Shown: positions 7,503 to 20,849, counted from the stretch's first letter. The stretch is DNA of 20,849 bases from Paraphysomonas bandaiensis (GCA_965644295.1 CBFFRP010000624.1:1-20849), one strand, 5' to 3'. Notes: generated by a model from the sequence alone, not told the origin. Program-made: numbers and translations.

Positions 7503-10500
7503 TTAGAATGTTTTCACAATCATACGATTTCGTTCGTCTAAATGTAGTCCGTAGTTTCTGAACATCATGCTGTCATAGAAGGGACGAAGGTCGAATATAT
7601 TAAGTGACTTAGCCCTGTTCTCTAGGTCATCCATATATACCTTCACAATATCAGCAGACTTCTTGTATCGCAACTGTGAAATGTCAATACATAAGACATA
7701 ACGAATAGTATACTAAAGTATAATGCTGACGTACTTGATGGTACTTCTCCGCATCCCTGATGAGGCCTTGCAACTGGTGCATAATCAATTGGTTATTTTC
7801 CTCGCCAAAAGTAATGTACTTTCTGAAGGCTCGTTGCAGAGAATTCTTCACTGATACCTTCTGTGCTTGAAGGAACGACTCAAGCATAACCTTGATGGCG
7901 AAGTCTACATCGTCGTCTCTCACATAGTCCCGTAGGTGCATTCGCGCAGTGGCCTCCGCCATACGCATAATGCTCTCAATGTGTCGGACAGCGATAGGCA
8001 CTCCCCCAGATATAGTACTCTGTGCCCTCAGGTCCGCGTACAGTGAGGCCACCTTCTCGGAGTCCACCTCGCGCAGTACGGGTTTTACAAAGGCCCTGGC
8101 ATACTTGATGTATTTTTTCAGGAGATCCTGCTTCACTGGGGGAGGTCCGCCGTCAATGGAGGTGTATTGGGACTCTGGCGGTGCCCCTGCAATTACCACA
8201 AAATCGTGGGAAAGAGAAAAAATACCGAGGGTGACGAACCTAAATACTCACGTTCTCCCTGGCGGTGTTGACCGGGAAGGGAGTCGACCATGGCGTCACG
8301 GTCGATATGTACTTGAACATCACCTGGATCACCATTTCCCTGCGATGACTCCAGGTCGTCGTCGGTCACAGTGGGCAGTCCCAGTTCTCCTTCCTGGAAA
8401 TTGGGGTGAGATCGCATATGGCTATTTACAACAAAGTTGGCAAGCTGCTCGTCGACAACGGGGTCAACAATATCCTGAAGAACACAGAGCACATCAAAGC
8501 GCTGCAAAATTGGATCTGTGAGCTCCACGTTTTCTGCGAGGGTAAATGATGGGTCGTACCGCCCGCTAATAGGGTTGGCCGCAGCAATGACAGCACACCT
8601 CGCCTGTAATGAGGTAAGGATTCCAGCTTTGGCGACAGATATCGTTTGCTGCTCCATTGCCTCGTGAATGGATGTCCTGTCCTGCTCGTTCATCTTGTCA
8701 AACTCGTCAATTAGACAAACACCCTGATCAGCGAGAACCAGGGCACCCCCTTCGAGTGTCCATTCCTTAGTGAGCGGATCCTTGTGCACTCCAGCAGTGA
8801 GACCAACTGCAGACGCGCCCTTACCAGTGCTATACACAGCACGTGGAGCGGTTTTCTCCACGTACTTGAGTAGCTGCGATTTCGCAGTCCCAGGGTCGCC
8901 GAGCAACAACACATTGATATCCCCTCGAACCCTGTGCGTTCCTTTCGACCCACTATCTTTGGCACAACCACCAAACAAAGACAGTGCGACCGCAGTCTTT
9001 ACGTGTCGGTGCCCGTATATAGAGGGGGCGATCGATTTTATTATTCTATCAACAATCTGCATCACAGCTAATAAAAATCTTGTGCTGGTTATTGAAGGCA
9101 GGACCAAACACACCTGTGGATCTTGCCCCAGTCTGACTATGAGCCGCTTATCTTCCTCTGAGATGTCTGCGTTGATATTGCCACCCTTCCGTTGAACAAA
9201 ATTGGCATCTATGATAGTGGAGAACACTGGAAATCCATTTTTGTTCTTGGCATGAGTACCAGTATCTGATGGCCAGCAGGTGATAAGTGAAAACGTAGTG
9301 TATAAACGCATATCAGCGCAATCAGAAGAGTGTAGGTACTATACAAAGATGGGAGCACGGAATACGTACCCTGGGCGTGTCTGTAGACACCTGTGACCTC
9401 CACTTCTTCACCAGGCCTTGCAATGTCAATGAGATCTCCCAGTAGGACCACATCCTTGTAGCGTGGCACTCGTCCTGGAGGCACAGAACCAGGGCTCTCC
9501 TGTAGAGTAATCTTCTGGTAGTTACCGTATTCGGTCTTGGCAATATCGACTTTGAAGGGACCAGTCTCAGAACAGTTAGTGCAACTATGAGGGCGTGCCT
9601 CGCCGGCAAAGGGGCCTAGTACCTCGGAACAATGTGTACATCTAAAGGATACCGATTTCATCTGCGGGAAGACACCAGTCCGTCTCGTAATCACTACATA
9701 TCTGGGTGAGATATAATGGCGTTAAACAAGTAACTTACCTCCAGAGACACGCACAAGACAGTTTAGATGGCCTTGGCGAAGGTCTCTCAAACGATCCGAT
9801 ATTGGAAGGTCTGTAATACGTACGTGCATTTCCTGCGCTATCTGCGTGTAGTGGGTAAAGCCTTCCAGTACGACCTCCTTCAACACCTCGTCGAATATAC
9901 CTAACATGTCTCTCGGCAAATCTGCAAGCCATATGGCTAAGATGGGAGCATATTCACCCAAGTGTACGTAAGAAACTTCCAAAGAAGAGCTATTGGCAGC
10001 GCACATAGCTCTGATTTTGTTAGGGTAGACAGTAGGACCATCCATGGAGGGCCTATACCGATGTATAAATTTTTTGAATCTTTTCTTGATCTCTCTCCGT
10101 GTTCTATCCTGCGCTATCCACTCGCGCAGGGGAACATCGAACCCCTACAAAAAATTATATACATACACATTATAAGGCGATTTCGACCTCAAGGTTGACG
10201 TCTAGCTCCTTGTACTGATCTTCTGCTTCATCTTCTTCATCTATCGCCCCTTCATCACCAACAGTACCGTAGTGAGTGCGAAATACACCAGCAGAGGGAG
10301 CTGTATCTTGTACATCGTAGTCCGCCAATTCATCTAGGAAGGAAACACTCATGTGAGGCAATATTAGCAGAGTTATTCATGCAAAAAAAGACCTATGCGG
10401 GTCTCCCGGGTTGTCATACGTTCTCGGTCACGCTGGTCTAGCATTTCCGTTACATGTCTTCTTTGTGCGTAGGTCATTCTATCCTCCTCTTTATCCGATG

Positions 10501-10820
10501 CCAAATCGTTGGCATCATAGCGGTCCAGCTCCGGTACTGCTGTGTAGTCCCTATTGCAAACATAACAGACGGACGAGAGAGGCTCAGTCAGACACTCACT
10601 GAAGCCATGTGTCGGCCAGGTCCTCCCCTTCCTCATCTTCAACATTTTCATCTTCGCCATTATAATCGTCGGGGTTGCTACCCAGAGACTCCTCGTCACT
10701 GTCTCTCGTCATGTGACGTGTGTATCGAGGCTCGTCTATGACTGAATCGTTTGGGTCTTCCTCCTCATCATCTGCGGTGACACGAAAGCGCCTCCTCTTC
10801 ACACCTGACTGCTGCTCCAT
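7503..10820 (-). CDS. MCM2: DNA replication licensing factor MCM2 (multi-exon)
   Basis: Acidic N-terminus with the MCM2-specific histone-binding motif [12 protein letters not shown]; C4 zinc finger CTHC...CTNC; [14 protein letters not shown]; Walker [10 protein letters not shown]; Walker B IDEFDKM; [17 protein letters not shown]; arginine finger LQRFD; sensor-2 AVRHIES. The last exon reads LRYKK...MIVKTF* with TAA at 7505-7503. Introns are short GT-AG. Confidence 0.97.
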
Positions 10821-13818: not shown

Positions 13819-13923
13819 CGACGGAACAATATCTTCTGTCTATGAATGTGGACAATTCTCTGCCCTACGATGGCAAATACAGTCCAACATAAAGTTTCAC
13901 TCTATTAACCAGCTCCAAGCCCA

Positions 13924-16900
13924 ATGTCTCTATTGAGACTGTGGCTGAGTCACATCAGTGTGCCCAGGGCCTTTTACACTCCCTTACTGCTGCATTTTGT
14001 TGACCACCACGCTTCTGACAAATTACCTGTCACACCATGTTGTACACGCTCCAAGCCCCCCTGCCTGGCCTTGCAACCTTCACCCTACTCAACTACTTCA
14101 GTTAAACCACGTGCCTGCACCAATGCAGCGCTGACCGCACCTACGTGCTATCCCCTCAGCAGACAACTTCGTCTCACCCATCGCTTTCTACGGCTACAAC
14201 CTCTCAGAACATGGCTCGTGCGAGCAGGCTCACGAAAACGACCCCCATGGACCCCCTATGCAATCACTGAATACTCTCGATCCCTCTCAACTGTGCAACA
14301 GGGCTGCCTTCTGCCGCCCACTCAACCCAACCCAACATGGTTTGTCTGTGGTCCATCCACCCAGCAGGCTACCCCCTCACCCTGTTCACCTATCACCCCC
14401 ACAGCCCATCCATCTCATTGGATAGACACTGTATTCCGCATACGGTATACTCGACTACTGTACTACTGTGTCCTACAGGATGTATACCATTCCGTGTATA
14501 CCTCTACTGCTGTTGGACACATCACCATGTCCATGTACCTGTATACCTGTACTGTTGGGCACATCACCATGTCCATGTACCTGTCTACCTGTACTGTTGG
14601 ACACATCACCAGCTCTCTCTCACTGTCCAATACACTCATAACACCACTGCAGTGTCATACACACACACAGTACACTCTACCTCCTCCTAGAAAACCCCCA
14701 GACAAACTATCGCCTCTCCCTTACTGGGCGTACTGGTCCACCCACTATTCCTCCTTCCTTCCACAAACTCAATTCCTTCCATCTTATGATGTGTTTTGCT
14801 CCAACGATCACTTCTTCCTGGACACCAAATACCCGGTGGAGTTGGAACTACACGCGCTACTCGAGAGAATTCCTGACCTCGTCATCATGCGTCTCCAAAA
14901 TGTGTTGCAATGTCATTCCAAGGGAATGCAAGGAGTCCACCGTGCCAGGTCCATCAACCATCCCTCCCACGCCCTTCAGGGGAAGGAATTCTCCTCCGAT
15001 AACAGCGGTGACGGACCTAGCAAATCCACCCACACATTACCCTTACCCACTAAGGATGCCACCACACCGTATGCAACGTTATTTGACTATTTCCCAGTCA
15101 AACGGAAGCCACCTACCACCAACCTTACTCAACTGAACACCATGGGAACTCCAGCATTAGCCCCAGACGGCCCATCCTCACTCTCCACTACCACTCCTGA
15201 CCTCAGGCCGGATGTACTGCCCAAGGATATTGCCACATACCCCCTACACTACACAGAGGGCCGGGGTCACACGCCCTTTCACTCCGATCTGCTGAACAAC
15301 TGGGTTAGATATGATGAAACCCAAACTATTGCTGCCTCCCCACAGGGAAACCTTTTAAAAGAAATATACGCACACATGCTATCCCCTGCCTGTTTAGACA
15401 TATGGGAAGGATTCATAGCCAAGGCTTCCAGGACGGACAACTATGATCTCATGATATCATTCACGCTACCAGAGCACAAATTGGACACCACGCACAGCGC
15501 CCTACTAGTTGCCCAGCATCTCGCGAATGGCAACAAACCCTGGGCAGACTCCACTCATGTTGTATCTAGGCATGTGCGGACCCTTTGCCTGACAAAGGGT
15601 ATTCCCTCAACAGCCACTGTCACTCTCCGTAAGACACTTATGCAATATGAATCCTCGAATCCACACACAGGACTACATCTAGACACGGAGGATTTCCAAC
15701 TGCTACTCGATCTTCTCTCCATACCATACAGACTATGGGACGCTGTTCAACCGCACCTGGCGCCTGGTTGGGCACAGCTATCACCATTCTCCAGACAGGC
15801 ACTAACAGTGCACGCTTCTACCAACACTGTGGTAACCCATGACATCATACGCAGCCAGCATGGGTTTCACATACTAAATGCAACAAATATCCCCACCTCC
15901 ATCATGCACGCTCTAACACGAACTCAGGAGCGGCTATCCTGTTTTCTACAACACCAGACCTCCAGACAGAGCACCAACATCATCTGGACTTCTGAACCGT
16001 CAACTGTACCATCTATGCTACATGAGCAAAGAGAGCAACAGGAACAGAGGGAAGTAATTGCAGTCTCCTTGTCACCGAGAGCTCGACGTCAACTACGGCA
16101 GATGAACCCCACGGACCGTCGACAACTCAGGCTCCATATGTGCGACATGAGCAGAGTCTATCGCCTCACCCTCAGACCCTCAGCCCTTCGCACACAACAA
16201 CATATCCCAAGTGATGGATACTGCGCATACAGCACACTCTATCATCTGCACATTCTTGCTTCAAGCAGGCGACACACTCGCTCCTGTCTGAAATTAGACC
16301 TCAAACAACGCAAGGACCGTCACACGCTAGCATCTTTTATAAATACATTAGGCACCCAAGCGTTCGACACAATGCAACGGGAGTGCATGGCCCATCACAC
16401 ACTTCAGCCACTACGACATAAGTTGGATCACGCACAGGCCGCACTTTTAATACCTGCCAAAACAACATACACTACGGAGGACGACATAACTCACTGGCTC
16501 TCAGTGCGAGAGGTCCACCTTTTAGCCTCTACTATCAACCCCTGCACGACGTGGGCGCAAAATGGTAATTATCTCAGCATTGTAGGCATCCCTACTGACA
16601 AAGTAGCTTATAACATCGCATGGAAGGTGGAGGAACTTAGGAACGCTATTCGTGATAACTACTACCATGTCATACTACAAGATGCTCACTACTTCCTCTT
16701 AGACCCTGCCGGTCTTTCTACTGCCCTAGACAACGCCCTACTATCTCTTGAAAACACCTTGGCCACCAGTATACTCTCAACGTCTGACCCCATCGCTCCA
16801 CCTACACTTCCCGCGGACTCAATCACGAACAACAATAGGACATCAAAGACGACCAGCACCAGAACAACCTCGTCCAGCAGCACCAAGTTAGCACGAACAA

Positions 16901-18042
16901 ATCGACAGATTCTGCAGGCTTCAACCCCTGGAGCACTACCATCGCACAAGAAGATGCAGTTGAAACACGCCCAAACTGCGTTGACAAGTCGATACCAGCC
17001 AACCCGGAAAGCCAAAAAGGTCGTAAATTACGATGAAAGTGACCAACCAACGAACCTTCACAACTCACACCAATCCACGACCACACGAACGATCAGACCA
17101 ACTCCAGCACTTGATACCACCAGCTGGGACAAGGACTGGTCAAGAAAGTTCTACATTGCGTACGCCGATAACACTGCCAAAGGACTATCCCTTTATGCGA
17201 AGAACACATTCCCAGCAGACGTCATCATTGCTGAGTACAAAGGCAAACGCTATCCACTAACAAAGCTGAGTCAGTCTGCAAGGCGTTCTGATTACATAGT
17301 TCAAGACAGTACTGGTACCTTCGCAATAGATGGCTTTGACCAAGTCCGACAATGTGTAACATGCGAAGCTGGGTATATTAATGACCCCCTAGCCACAAAC
17401 ATGGCTAATGTCAAGTTTGTCACGAAAAATAAACGCCTCTATGTCCGTACAATACGTCCCATTGCTAAGGATGAAGAACTTCTCATCAACTACGGGCATC
17501 ATTACTGGTGTGATCAACGCTGGCCACTTGAGATATTAATCCAAGCCAGGGCTGCGTACGACAGCGACATAGGCGGTGCCAATAAAGCAGTATGGGACAG
17601 ACTCCTTGCAGACAAGAGTGGAACTCCTACAGAGACCTCCAGCAGCATCCCCAAGGCTTCCTCGGGAGCAGCCATGGGACTCCGACTCTCCACATGGAAC
17701 ACAAATGGCAATCCGGCATCTCACACAGGCAAAGTCCAAGCTATCATCCGACACTTTAAGCGGCAAAAATTGGACGTGCTCCTATTACAGGATGTCCGTC
17801 TAACAGAAACTCAGGCCAACTTCTTCACACGTATCATAGAAGATGCAATCCAGGGATCAAGAATATGCCTCTTCCTCAGCAAGCAGCCAAAACTGACTTC
17901 AAGAGACCCACTAATGGGGGGTACAGTAGTCATAATCAGCGAATACTGGAAGCGCCGTCTCGCCTTCACAAAGGCTGACTTTACGGGACTTGGTTTAGTG
18001 AGCCGACTAGAGTTCAAAACGTCGGTGGCGCACACACCCTAG
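13924..18042 (+). CDS. Retrotransposon polyprotein, uninterrupted part (1372 aa): unknown N-terminus - OTU-like protease - SET domain - N-half of APE endonuclease
   Basis: OTU: HIPSDGYCAYSTL (16201-16239), HWLSVREVHLLA (16492-), ILQDAHYFLL (H at 16687). SET: KGLSLYAKNTFPADVIIAEYKG, AGYINDP, ANVKF, IRPIAKDEELLINYGHHYW (17179-17508). APE: LRLSTWNTNG, LDVLLLQD, GGTVVII. The true start codon may lie downstream of 13924. Confidence 0.8.
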   Translation: MSLLRLWLSHISVPRAFYTPLLLHFVDHHASDKLPVTPCCTRSKPPCLALQPSPYSTTSVKPRACTNAALTAPTCYPLSRQLRLTHRFLRLQPLRTWLVRAGSRKRPPWTPYAITEYSRSLSTVQQGCLLPPTQPNPTWFVCGPSTQQATPSPCSPITPTAHPSHWIDTVFRIRYTRLLYYCVLQDVYHSVYTSTAVGHITMSMYLYTCTVGHITMSMYLSTCTVGHITSSLSLSNTLITPLQCHTHTQYTLPPPRKPPDKLSPLPYWAYWSTHYSSFLPQTQFLPSYDVFCSNDHFFLDTKYPVELELHALLERIPDLVIMRLQNVLQCHSKGMQGVHRARSINHPSHALQGKEFSSDNSGDGPSKSTHTLPLPTKDATTPYATLFDYFPVKRKPPTTNLTQLNTMGTPALAPDGPSSLSTTTPDLRPDVLPKDIATYPLHYTEGRGHTPFHSDLLNNWVRYDETQTIAASPQGNLLKEIYAHMLSPACLDIWEGFIAKASRTDNYDLMISFTLPEHKLDTTHSALLVAQHLANGNKPWADSTHVVSRHVRTLCLTKGIPSTATVTLRKTLMQYESSNPHTGLHLDTEDFQLLLDLLSIPYRLWDAVQPHLAPGWAQLSPFSRQALTVHASTNTVVTHDIIRSQHGFHILNATNIPTSIMHALTRTQERLSCFLQHQTSRQSTNIIWTSEPSTVPSMLHEQREQQEQREVIAVSLSPRARRQLRQMNPTDRRQLRLHMCDMSRVYRLTLRPSALRTQQHIPSDGYCAYSTLYHLHILASSRRHTRSCLKLDLKQRKDRHTLASFINTLGTQAFDTMQRECMAHHTLQPLRHKLDHAQAALLIPAKTTYTTEDDITHWLSVREVHLLASTINPCTTWAQNGNYLSIVGIPTDKVAYNIAWKVEELRNAIRDNYYHVILQDAHYFLLDPAGLSTALDNALLSLENTLATSILSTSDPIAPPTLPADSITNNNRTSKTTSTRTTSSSSTKLARTNRQILQASTPGALPSHKKMQLKHAQTALTSRYQPTRKAKKVVNYDESDQPTNLHNSHQSTTTRTIRPTPALDTTSWDKDWSRKFYIAYADNTAKGLSLYAKNTFPADVIIAEYKGKRYPLTKLSQSARRSDYIVQDSTGTFAIDGFDQVRQCVTCEAGYINDPLATNMANVKFVTKNKRLYVRTIRPIAKDEELLINYGHHYWCDQRWPLEILIQARAAYDSDIGGANKAVWDRLLADKSGTPTETSSSIPKASSGAAMGLRLSTWNTNGNPASHTGKVQAIIRHFKRQKLDVLLLQDVRLTETQANFFTRIIEDAIQGSRICLFLSKQPKLTSRDPLMGGTVVIISEYWKRRLAFTKADFTGLGLVSRLEFKTSVAHTP
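14510..14610 (+). repeat. 42-bp in-frame minisatellite (2.4 copies) within the polyprotein ORF
   Basis: Unit ctgttggacacatcaccatgtccatgtacctgtatacctgta starts at 14510, 14552 and 14594. It translates as VGHITMSMYLYTCT repeats. Confidence 0.9.
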
Positions 18043-20849
18043 TACTAATAAGCGTCTATCTACCCCGAAGCCATCCACGCCAGGCTCTTGCACATTATGG
18101 AGCAAATTGACCAAGCTAGGGAGAGCGTCCCGTGGTATCTGTACGGCCGACGCCTACAAGCTCCTATGCAACATCCTTACCCGAAGTGGGTCACTAAAGC
18201 CAGAGCCAAGGACCATACTGTCATTGTCGCCGGCGACTTCAATGGCTCCATGGGAGACAAATCCGAAAGGCAGAGACATACGACCACTTGCCGACAAACT
18301 CCAACTGGCTGCACCACTCCATGAGCTTCTCCTACCCAGGAAAACATATCATACCTTCCACAGATTAGACAAAGGAATATCGCGGATCCTGATCATATTC
18401 TGCACACGCCGTTACTTCCGAACATGTCTGTTACGGACACTGGCTGCCTTGACTCCCCTCACTACTCGCAGCAGCCTTCGATCATCGACCAGTCTGGGTC
18501 GGTTTCACTGTACCGAGTCAATCATGACCCTCGACCCACTAGGAGTCGCACCTCCGAATCCCCCGTCTCAATGTAAACCCGAAGGACTCCAAGGAAATGC
18601 AGGCATACACCGCAAGACTCCTCCAACTTCATGCACAACTACCACATTTAGACAACGGATCGTCTGCCATACTCCCTCCTGAGGTGGCAGCCAACAGACT
18701 AGCGGCCATCCATCCTGACCCTCAGGCTTCGCTTGAAGCGAAGCGTCCTACGTATACACATAGCACACGACTACACGAACGTTGTCAGCGCAAACGCTCA
18801 AAGTTCAAGAATGGCTTTTCCCGGAAATGAGAGTAATACAGGAAGGAATGATCATGGTTTTGCGGATTATCCAAAAGATGTTCAATTCTGCCGGATGCAA
18901 ACGGCATGGATGGCGCGGCCCCGGCAACCACCCCACCCACGAAATCATCACTGCATGGTTCATCCGATGGGACTCCTATCTCAGGAGGTTCTCAGGGTCA
19001 CATCAAAGGCGCCTCAGGCATAGCCTGGTGCAGCCATCGCAACGCGGACCCCCGAGTAATCCTGGGTTGGAACGAAAAGCAAGCCACCAAGAAAAACCTT
19101 CTCCGAATTGCCTTGCAATGAGAGGACTTCTTCATGGAAGAGCCGGGACAGAAATGCAGGACTAGACTCACGGCTCGCACCAATCAGATGGAGGCACTGC
19201 TACAGCAGAAAGACTGCAAGCAATTCTTCAGAAAATTGGTCTCAAGGTCAAAACACCACTCCGACTTACCACGGTGAAAACAACCCGAGCGGACATCCGC
19301 CGGCACGCAAGACATTCATGAAGCAGTAATGCACTTCCGTGAACATCATGCCAAACCTCCTGGACTTGACCCTGTAGCACAACAGCTCCAGGATGACCCT
19401 GGGCAATCTGTGATCCGAGGCTCAGCGCTTGCCTTCAAGGCCTCCACCCCACTCAAGTGTTCCTCTTCCCCTGCAACTGGGGTTACGACGAGCCCCGTTG
19501 GCCCGCAACGGAACCACTCCGGCCATGGCAGCATCACACTCAAATCTACTCTTGCAAAAGACATCACCAGGGTAGATTCTACACACCTTCACTCTCTCTC
19601 CTTCAACCGCGCGCCTGGACCTCCAATGGTCTATCAACACAAGTCATTCTGGCCACCAATGGATTCCAGCGAGCTTACATCCTCACCGAATCTCTCTGGA
19701 AACATAAACATGTGCCAGGTGGAGAGGCAAGGTGGTATGCCCATTCTCAGAAACCAAGGAGAATCCTCCCTCACTAATCTAAGCAGTTGGTCTGGCGAAG
19801 TCAGTAGGAAAATATTAACAAGGATAATCGCCATGGTCCCTTGCGGGGAGGCAAAGAAAGTTTTGCATCCGTCCCAGCATGATTGTCGCTGGAGGGAACA
19901 GGACGGACTGGCAGTACTCCAGGTGCTCAGCTGGAAGAAGCAAGACGAAAAGGCGACCGGCAAATATGTACACTCTGGGACTTCAAGAAGGTATTAAACT
20001 CCAGTGCGCCTAACCTGTGCATCTCGCGTGGGCACGACTGGGCGTTCGGACGTGTAGTTGACTGGTTTGGCAACTTAGATGCCGGCGTTAACATTTCCCC
20101 TGGACACCATTCATCGCCGACAACATGAAGAACCCGTTCTCCTTGACCTCCTGACTCCGCAGACAGCCCGCACTTCATTACACCTATTCAGTCTGGTTTA
20201 AATGAGGTGCCTCACCCAAAGGCACAGAGTCCCATGCATACAGGTGGCACTCTGACATCAGCCTCTCCCATTGGCTGGACATTGAACTGTCAACAACGAG
20301 TCCAACATTTACCAACCTGTTCAACTCACGACTCCGACTACCGGCAAAATAAAGATCTCCTTCGCGGATGATCTTAACTAGTAGCTAAATCCATACGCTG
20401 CCCAACTCATTTGTATAGCTCTCTGCGTTCTGTGCTAGAATGGAACTCTCATCCCCAAAGTAGTTTGCACAGTGTTCCGATCCTACAAGATTCCAACAGA
20501 GTCACTCCGACCCCATTGGCTACATCATTCTCTACGACCAGATCAGCAGTCCACCAGGTCTCTCCAAACATCACTAGAGTCGATACATTACCTCGGAGCA
20601 GACCTTCCTCTCACAATCACAGACAGAGCCTCCCATGATTGTCAAATACACAAAGTCGACCACACCTAGGGATTAAACAGGCCTCAGCCGGCTGTAAAGT
20701 CATGGTTATCGAGACCCAAATCATACCGACTGCTCTATAGAGCCACCAGCTTCATGGCCACTACACTGGTACAGAGAAATTGACGCTGCTTGCGCAGCCA
20801 CTCCTACAGAAGGCCCTCAGTCCATTTGAATTACCCCACGGAACTGATC
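18040..20849 (+). pseudogene. Frameshifted continuation: C-half of APE endonuclease and reverse transcriptase
   Basis: LVLISVYLP in a shifted frame at ~18039, VIVAGDFN (GDFN 18232-18243), TFHR..SRI/DHIL, FDHRPVW (DH at 18480). RT motifs: RAPGP (~19608), EVSRKILTRII, LHPSQH, WDFKKVLNS (19976), FADD (20361-20372), HYLGA (20586). There are many frameshifts, from either decay or sequencing error. Confidence 0.8.

Follow-up and report, generated by a model that had tools for sequence, protein, structure and literature searches.

A LINE-type retrotransposon family of Paraphysomonas bandaiensis with a SET domain and OTU-like modules in frame with its endonuclease and reverse transcriptase

The window analyzed here, which appears to be the entire 20,849-bp contig G000:C624:1-20849 of the assembly of the marine protist Paraphysomonas bandaiensis, contains on its plus strand (13854..20849) the greater part of a long interspersed nuclear element (LINE) of the apurinic/apyrimidinic endonuclease (APE) type. 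The single giant open reading frame (ORF) of this element encodes OTU-like modules and a SET domain ahead of the APE and reverse transcriptase (RT) domains. The SET-APE-RT fusion is a trait of the family, and the element has recently been mobile. Taken as a whole, the window probably holds a young copy of an APE-type LINE with OTU-fold modules, SET, APE, and RT, for which roles in chromatin and ubiquitin biology are proposed below. The SET fusion appears to be the new part; a LINE with accessory enzymatic domains is of a known kind. In the usual view, a LINE can manage with an RNA-binding protein, a nuclease, and a reverse transcriptase, and LINEs are acted on by host chromatin silencing rather than being bearers of chromatin enzymes themselves.

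The window copy comprises the 5' 7.0 kb of an element of ~9.36 kb, with a full-length 5' end and with the 3' side lost at the end of the contig. It aligns from position 510 to position 7578 of an intact copy in the same genome, L037, taken as its reverse complement, and the 5' junction (AATTCTCTGCC...; window 13854, position 510 of the L037 reverse complement) is identical in the two. A 5' untranslated region of 70 nt (13854..13923) precedes the ATG, and the intact portion of the giant ORF (13924..18042, ATG to stop, 1372 amino acids) is 99.7% identical to L037 with no indel. A sequence-only reading of this DNA had proposed that one uninterrupted frame links OTU, SET, APE, and RT. In the window this holds for the OTU-like region, SET, and the start of APE (13924-18042), but there is a stop at 18042 inside APE and the later motifs lie in three frames; RT pieces and other downstream fragments of the window gave no Pfam match. 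The uninterrupted SET-APE-RT frame is present in other copies in the genome, namely L037 (on contig C440; 3016 amino acids), L040 (2788 amino acids), and L041 (2409 amino acids).

A six-frame search of the source genome (62.6 Mb), using as the query the stretch from the third OTU-like module (OTU3) through SET to APE, returned 79 matches. Twenty-four of these were 97-100% identical with no stop across OTU3-SET-APE, and the remainder fell into identity bands of 82-92%, 59-67%, and 41-47%. Intact ORFs, of which there is one per copy, are mostly about 2,800-3,000 amino acids long (2819 in L038), and the C644 copy (L033+L039, G000:C644:2114-13306) has an open frame of 3731 amino acids from stop to stop. 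The domain order in intact copies is up to three OTU-like modules, SET, APE, RT, a stretch with RNase H-like motifs, and a Cys/His knuckle, and this architecture is conserved across four subfamilies, which together with the 79 matches goes well beyond what chance would produce. The SET-APE-RT fusion can be called a family property because the Pfam order SET, Exo_endo_phos, RVT_1, with all three above threshold, recurs in L037, L040, and L041, which have 43-62% mutual identity. In every subfamily SET lies upstream of APE, in frame, at a distance of ~65 residues.

The 11-bp sequence GTAATTCATAA borders the full-length copy L037 at each end as a target-site duplication. Copies are 5'-truncated, with varied start points, and have a common 3' end ~235 nt past the stop codon (...CACTACTA) without poly(A), which gives the element length stated above; the element has no long terminal repeat or terminal inverted repeat. 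The duplication, the truncation points, and the shared 3' end together form the signature of LINE insertion by target-primed reverse transcription. The sequence-only reading had called the element LINE-like, and APE and RT domains, the target-site duplication, the 5'-truncated copies, and the many young, near-identical copies all bear this out.

The SET domain occupies 17113..17622 on the plus strand of the window, and it was found where the sequence-only reading had put it. The Pfam SET core (PF00856; E 4.8e-9, 37 bits versus a cut-off of 22.4) covers ORF residues 1087-1191, that is, 17182-17496, and the characteristic stretches are KGLSLYA at 17179, GYINDPL at 17371, and LINYGHHYW at 17482. 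PF00856 scores 34.6-37.3 bits in three subfamilies. The nearest solved SET domains are PBCV-1 vSET, KMT2C/D (MLL3/4), and the PR domain of PRDM1 (E 0.005-0.03). As in these proteins, there is an alignable GxG-type motif on the N-terminal side, as well as the Asn and the Tyr of a C-terminal EEL..Y(G), and the C-terminal end closely resembles that of PBCV-1 vSET. Unlike these proteins, the family has IND in place of NHS, has no pre- or post-SET Cys cluster, and embeds the domain in a 3,000-amino-acid retrotransposon protein. The SET Asn and the C-terminal Tyr are invariant across subfamilies and in 30/30 copies. What counts against an active enzyme is the cofactor motif, in which NHS reads IND in all subfamilies (GYINDPL; His-Ser replaced by Asp-Pro). 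Judged from its sequence, catalytic activity of the SET domain is plausible, though not assured.

Upstream of SET, full-length alignment identified three tandem paralogous modules, each with a (D/N)GxC loop, a W...E/D...LA...W stretch, and an H(Y/F) motif, that are collinear at the Cys loop, two Trp residues, and the His. Module 1 is complete in C644 only (GNGFCG, NQHFFLD). In the window, alignment with that complete module reveals a remnant of its C-terminal half (14716..14823, plus strand) that ends in DHFFLD, the Cys loop being gone in the window subfamily. Module 2 (15265..15900, plus strand) is degenerate in the window, where it is without the Cys loop and has a changed His motif (QHGFHIL); the module 2 Cys is retained in L041 only. 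It was recognized from the alignments, from its level of constraint (see below), and from an hhalign comparison with module 3 that was collinear but weak (E 0.003, probability 11%). OTU3, the third module (16126..16773, plus strand), keeps its Cys and His in all subfamilies. Its Cys (16222-16224), Trp (16495-16497), and His (16687-16689) are invariant in the four subfamilies (~41% identity) and in 30/30 copies, as are its (D/N)GYC and AH(Y/F) motifs. The positions proposed for the OTU motifs from the sequence alone were exact: IPSDGYC at 16204-16224 with Asp 16213 and Cys 16222, Trp 16495 in HWLSVRE, and His 16687 in AHYFLL.

Structure prediction points to an OTU fold for OTU3. An AlphaFold2 (AF2) model built from a merged 9-sequence alignment reached a pLDDT of 78 and a pTM of 0.79, with the Cys opening a helix (33-45) and the His in a strand (188-192). 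In a Foldseek search with this model, the top 43 PDB matches were all OTU deubiquitinases (best E 0.011, probability up to 0.95), and VIA-align applied to the Foldseek matches found all 50 to be OTU, with Z scores of 5.4-7.5 over 125-156 residues. A VIA scan of 48,161 chains, which was independent of Foldseek, likewise placed OTU proteins in all of the top 14 positions (Z 5.8-7.0, 125-144 residues aligned); every match of more than 100 residues was an OTU, and the others were helical hairpins. The top two clusters in an ESM Atlas shape search with the model were OTU and otubain. An ESM Atlas feature search was weak, with recognition below threshold and an OTU-bearing cluster no higher than rank 8. 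A first AF2 model, built from four module-3 sequences, was poor (pLDDT 59) and has been superseded; it had no significant Foldseek match, and VIA returned OTU only amid helical-hairpin noise.

Several observations weigh against this assignment. The Pfam OTU profiles (PF02338/PF10275) had no match among 8 module sequences at E<=10, and phmmer and hmmsearch comparisons with the PDB, using module 3, C644 module 1, and the merged alignment, recovered no OTU chain. The Z scores of the fold matches (<=7.5) are in the range that the tool terms "middling," and the OTU3 model was built on 9 sequences only, all from one LINE family. The residue at His+2 of OTU3, the place of the third triad member in many OTUs, is Phe or Tyr and thus neither acidic nor an amide; conserved Asp/Asn residues are found at His-2 and Cys-3. 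The PDB profile matches that the modules did return (lectin, TPR designs, and LuxP) were rejected as chance, and an exhaustive HMMER search of 1.84 billion representatives with the OTU3 profile recovered only two fragments, both from these elements, plus a repeat protein judged spurious. Because the Z scores are moderate and the alignment is shallow, the wording is kept cautious here: there is moderate support for OTU3 as a predicted, very divergent OTU-fold, Cys/His protease-like module, which is not a demonstrated member of the OTU family. The OTU-like domain of the sequence-only reading stands as far as the modeled fold, the structure searches, and the Cys/His motifs go, but it has no Pfam or PDB sequence-profile match behind it.

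The APE endonuclease begins downstream of SET, as had been proposed, at LSTWNTNGN (17686). In the window it extends over 17686..18560 on the plus strand, where it is open until 18042 and then frame-shifted, with GDFNGS at 18232 and DHRP at 18480. PF03372 (Exo_endo_phos) is above its cut-off in three copies, N-terminal to RT, and the APE motifs WN.NG, GDFN, SRIDH, and DHRP are present. The position that normally holds a metal-binding Glu (LQE; window 17779-17802) is Asp in three subfamilies (LQD/LLD) and Val in L040 (LQV). RVT_1 matches three intact copies with E values of 1e-14 to 3.5e-19, and FADD is present. The remaining APE, a linker, and most of RT can be followed through 18000..20849 (plus strand) of the window by the motifs WDFKK (19976), FADD (20361), and HYLGA (20586), across many 1-2 nt indels. 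The nearest RT relatives in databases are metagenome proteins with 28-44% identity. A search for RNase H after RT gave no Pfam match at E<=1 and no PDB profile match; the post-RT stretch is RNase H-like at the motif level only (TDGS, YEL, TDC, SHPE, ADA) and is strongly constrained, with a proportion of non-synonymous differences (pN) of 0.16.

Selection was assessed by comparing pN with the corresponding proportion at synonymous sites (pS), which between subfamilies is near saturation (mostly 0.63-0.78 in the named domains, and 0.61-0.88 when all segments are counted). In the comparisons of L037 with L040 and of L041 with C644, respectively, pN was 0.20 and 0.31 in OTU3, 0.20 and 0.16 in SET, 0.16 and 0.14 in APE, 0.15 and 0.13 in RT, 0.30 and 0.38 in OTU-like module 2, and 0.34-0.46 and 0.35-0.50 in the linkers. 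The young pair L037 and L038 differ in OTU3 by 8 synonymous and 4 non-synonymous changes. Purifying selection thus acts on both OTU3 and SET at close to the APE and RT levels, and the element therefore maintains these two domains, which are not passengers. The stretch between them (16774..17112, plus strand) is a fast-evolving linker, Ser/Thr-rich and basic, with a pN of 0.41-0.43 versus 0.16-0.31 in the domains on either side. Amid such linkers the motif HPS...QG..(Y/F)(S/T)SD.S(G/S)DGP occurs one to three times per element in all four subfamilies: as the conserved SSDNSGDGP at 14992..15018 (plus strand) in the window, at residues 113 and 280 in L041, and at residues 370, 1008, and 1042 in C644. 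It could be a processing or docking site.

The 5' ends of the elements vary by subfamily. An 870-nt low-complexity 5' region with 14-amino-acid tandem repeats characterizes the L037/window type; in the window these repeats (VGHITMSMYL..., 14512..14583, plus strand) lie in an N-terminal stretch unique to this subfamily. The L038 and L040 types begin within OTU-like module 1, with the Cys loop absent. The most elaborate subfamily is C644, which has the order SET-OTU1-OTU2-OTU3-SET-APE-RT; its second SET, in the N-terminal extension ahead of module 1, is weaker (22.6 bits versus the cut-off of 22.4) and 26% identical to the main SET. This order suggests that a SET/OTU unit was duplicated or else was lost from the other subfamilies.

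In the mechanism proposed here, the element would insert by means of an APE nick and target-primed reverse transcription. Because it is 65 residues from APE, the SET domain is placed to act at the target: tethered beside the nicking domain, it would methylate a histone lysine, or a lysine of some other chromatin protein, at the insertion site or close to it. OTU3 would most likely be a cysteine isopeptidase that strips ubiquitin-type modifiers off the element's protein or off chromatin nearby, a role that would parallel that of the OTU at the N terminus of nairovirus polymerases, which is structurally the nearest match to OTU3. The combination of a histone-methyltransferase-type domain beside the nicking domain with an upstream deubiquitinase-fold module, kept through deep subfamily divergence, suggests that the element may manipulate lysine methylation and ubiquitin signaling during insertion. 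In its fullest form the proposal is that the retrotransposon edits chromatin at its landing site, with SET writing a histone-lysine methyl mark during APE nicking and RT copying and OTU erasing ubiquitin from histones or the ORF protein, and in this way sets the state of the new copy or shields the insertion machinery from ubiquitin-dependent restriction. This fullest form is put forward tentatively and may well be wrong.

A somewhat unlikely alternative is that the OTU-like modules are not deubiquitinases but cis-acting proteases that cut the ~3,000-amino-acid polyprotein into OTU, SET, and APE-RT products, in the manner of the tymovirus OTU-like PRO and the arterivirus papain-like proteases. 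In its favor, the enzymes share one giant ORF with as many as three protease-like modules that precede them, fast-evolving linkers separate the domains, and the conserved linker motif SSDxSGDGP, which recurs between modules, could mark a processing site. Viral OTU-like proteases can both deubiquitinate and process polyproteins, which also favors this alternative. However, neither a ubiquitin-like LRGG site nor a 2A-like NPGP site was found in the protein, the best structural matches are the viral OTU (vOTU) domains of nairoviruses and the otubains, which deubiquitinate and do not process polyproteins, and the Cys is gone from modules 1 and 2 of the window subfamily with mobility unaffected.

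It is also unlikely, though consistent with part of the evidence, that SET, OTU3, or both are catalytically inactive and work by binding a histone tail or ubiquitin, which would tether the protein to particular chromatin and steer target choice. Inactive SET proteins with chromatin roles are known (PMC12886896). The altered SET cofactor motif and the lack of Asp/Asn at His+2 of OTU3 would both fit with loss of activity, and modules 1 and 2 are plainly degenerate yet constrained (pN 0.30-0.38 versus pS of ~0.7). In contrast, the OTU3 Cys and His, like the SET Asn and Tyr, have stayed invariant across subfamilies with ~41% identity and in 30/30 copies, as active sites would.

The preferred reading, that of a LINE whose accessory domains have proposed chromatin and ubiquitin roles, has several partial precedents. 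The best structural match of OTU3 is the vOTU at the N terminus of the L protein of nairoviruses such as Crimean-Congo hemorrhagic fever virus (Z 7.0-7.5, ~131-137 residues). Like nairovirus L, the element is a genetic parasite with an OTU-fold Cys/His protease on the N-terminal side of a huge polymerase-bearing protein. The two differ in that the predicted OTU3 module has 12-18% identity to vOTU and no profile match to it, and in that the nairovirus polymerase is an RNA-dependent RNA polymerase without SET or APE and vOTU has the His+2 Asp.

Among LINEs, Dualen/RandI elements have a Josephin-like cysteine protease according to the statement in PMC8557442 that cites Kojima & Fujiwara 2005, and NeSL and Utopia elements have a Ulp1-like protease (PMC4640811). 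A survey (bioRxiv 10.64898/2026.06.17.732966) devotes a single sentence to an ORF2p of Symbiodinium necroappetens with an N-terminal OTU domain and mentions in passing a Josephin-ORF2p of Haematococcus. The family described here is like these protease-bearing LINEs in having a polymerase protein with a deubiquitinase- or deSUMOylase-type cysteine protease, usually N-terminal, and unlike them in having up to three tandem, highly divergent OTU-fold modules. No SET is reported for the Dualen, NeSL, Utopia, or Symbiodinium LINEs, and the protease families differ save for the Symbiodinium OTU.

SET and OTU genes are also known from a different class of element. Helentrons carry OTU-like cysteine protease genes and an APE endonuclease domain (PMC4067079), and the oomycete element proto-Helentron-Pi, of Phytophthora infestans, has a separate SET-domain gene according to the same article; the legend of its Figure 5 has SET and OTU among the genes that are colour-keyed across four element types. 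Unlike the LINE family, however, Helentrons are rolling-circle DNA transposons, in which SET and OTU are separate ORFs that are not fused to the APE or RT protein. Acquired epigenetic writers are known from SymbioLINE-Dnmt and other retrotransposons, including LINEs, that carry DNA methyltransferases (PMC5890265). Like SymbioLINE-Dnmt, the family is a retrotransposon with an acquired epigenetic writer that is under purifying selection across subfamilies. The SymbioLINE-Dnmt writer is a cytosine DNA methyltransferase in ORF1, whereas here a SET domain is fused in frame beside APE. Full-text literature searches yielded no LINE with SET and none with the OTU-SET-APE-RT order, most subscription journals and Repbase Reports being outside their coverage. 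The novelty suggested in the sequence-only reading is accordingly narrowed by the known deubiquitinase-type proteases of LINEs and the known SET and OTU genes of Helentron-type transposons, and it may hold for the SET-LINE fusion, of which these searches found no other case.

The family would extend the captured DNA methyltransferases of retrotransposons (PMC5890265) to protein-lysine methylation. It offers a compact natural protein, combining a nickase, a reverse transcriptase, and a putative chromatin writer, that is directly testable, and many near-identical intact copies together with contigs from RNA libraries make experiments feasible.

The broken frames of the window copy past 18042 most likely stem from unpolished long-read errors at the end of the contig, not from decay of the element. 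Between 13854 and 18000, the window differs from L037 by 11 mismatches and zero indels; between 18000 and 20849, there are 158 mismatches and 171 gap columns, with a mismatch and gap rate that climbs smoothly to ~18% nearing the contig end, and 116 of the 125 gaps in this part are 1-2 nt long. Assembly noise is favored because one insertion has one age and because mutation yields far more substitutions than indels. At the positions where 18000-20849 differs, contigs of four public runs are concordant with each other and discordant with the window. These contigs derive from the whole family, which tells against using them here, as they are silent on the window locus and cannot separate error from decay there. 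True decay of 18000-20849, either in an old copy or in a mosaic that joins a young 5' portion to an old 3' portion, is doubtful. Other copies in the genome do have stops and many gaps (33-55 gap openings in L025, L026, and L029). A single insertion of a single age, however, should not be 99.7% identical and indel-free over 13854-18000 and then show a smoothly rising error rate toward its 3' end, and gap columns as frequent as substitutions, with nearly all gaps of 1-2 nt, are atypical of mutation and typical of unpolished long-read ends.

Independent sequence data also contain the element, which was found in runs of 12 studies covering two organisms and seawater, marine, and hydrocarbon metagenomes. 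The OTU3-SET junction is bridged by the contigs X1 record 1 (15500-17391) and X9 record 23, and the SET-APE junction by X9 record 24 (17373-18840) and X2 record 17 (17032-17807). The SET-APE order also occurs in separate assemblies, in the metagenome contigs L043 and L048, which are 97-100% identical to the L041 and L040 subfamilies, respectively. A one-off chimera, misassembly, or host-gene fusion as the source of the OTU-SET-APE junctions is vanishingly improbable, since the junction order recurs in 24 or more near-identical copies, in four subfamilies whose synonymous divergence is saturated, in L043 from a marine metagenome-assembled genome and L048 from an ENA metagenome, and in contigs of four independent sequencing runs that bridge the junctions.

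A polyA metatranscriptome (X15) contains contigs on several parts of the element, with 2.5 kb over RT among these. RNA-library contigs can contain DNA, which tempers this evidence, and expression of the element is likely but not proven. L043 and L048 had been considered as a possible independent lineage; with 97-100% identity to the genome's own subfamilies they are assigned to the same organism. L043 (NCBI GCA_002726235.1, PBSN01000010.1) is a 7.3-kb contig in a metagenome-assembled genome labeled "Nitrospiraceae bacterium" and looks like a mis-binned eukaryotic contig. For the more distant RT relatives L049-L051, the contigs end too early to show whether SET lies upstream, and the 390 nt preceding the APE of L049 had no SET match. 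Scans of JGI metagenome contigs with the OTU3 profile and the SET-APE profile found no relatives. One further RT relative, P0017 (an ENA contig, 875 amino acids, 31% identity), is annotated as HATPase_c plus response-regulator plus RVT_1 and is either an odd fusion or a gene-calling chimera.

Elsewhere in the window, a host MCM2 gene of several exons lies on the minus strand at 7687-10699, with matches to MCM2_N, MCM_N, MCM_OB, the MCM P-loop domain (E 8.5e-98), and MCM_lid. Its 5' end is ~3 kb from the 5' end of the LINE, and this neighbor confirms a eukaryotic nuclear setting. An ORF at 650-1021, also on the minus strand, has weak matches to WD40/beta-propeller proteins of the THOC3 and EML types, well below the cut-offs, and is probably an exon of a host gene.

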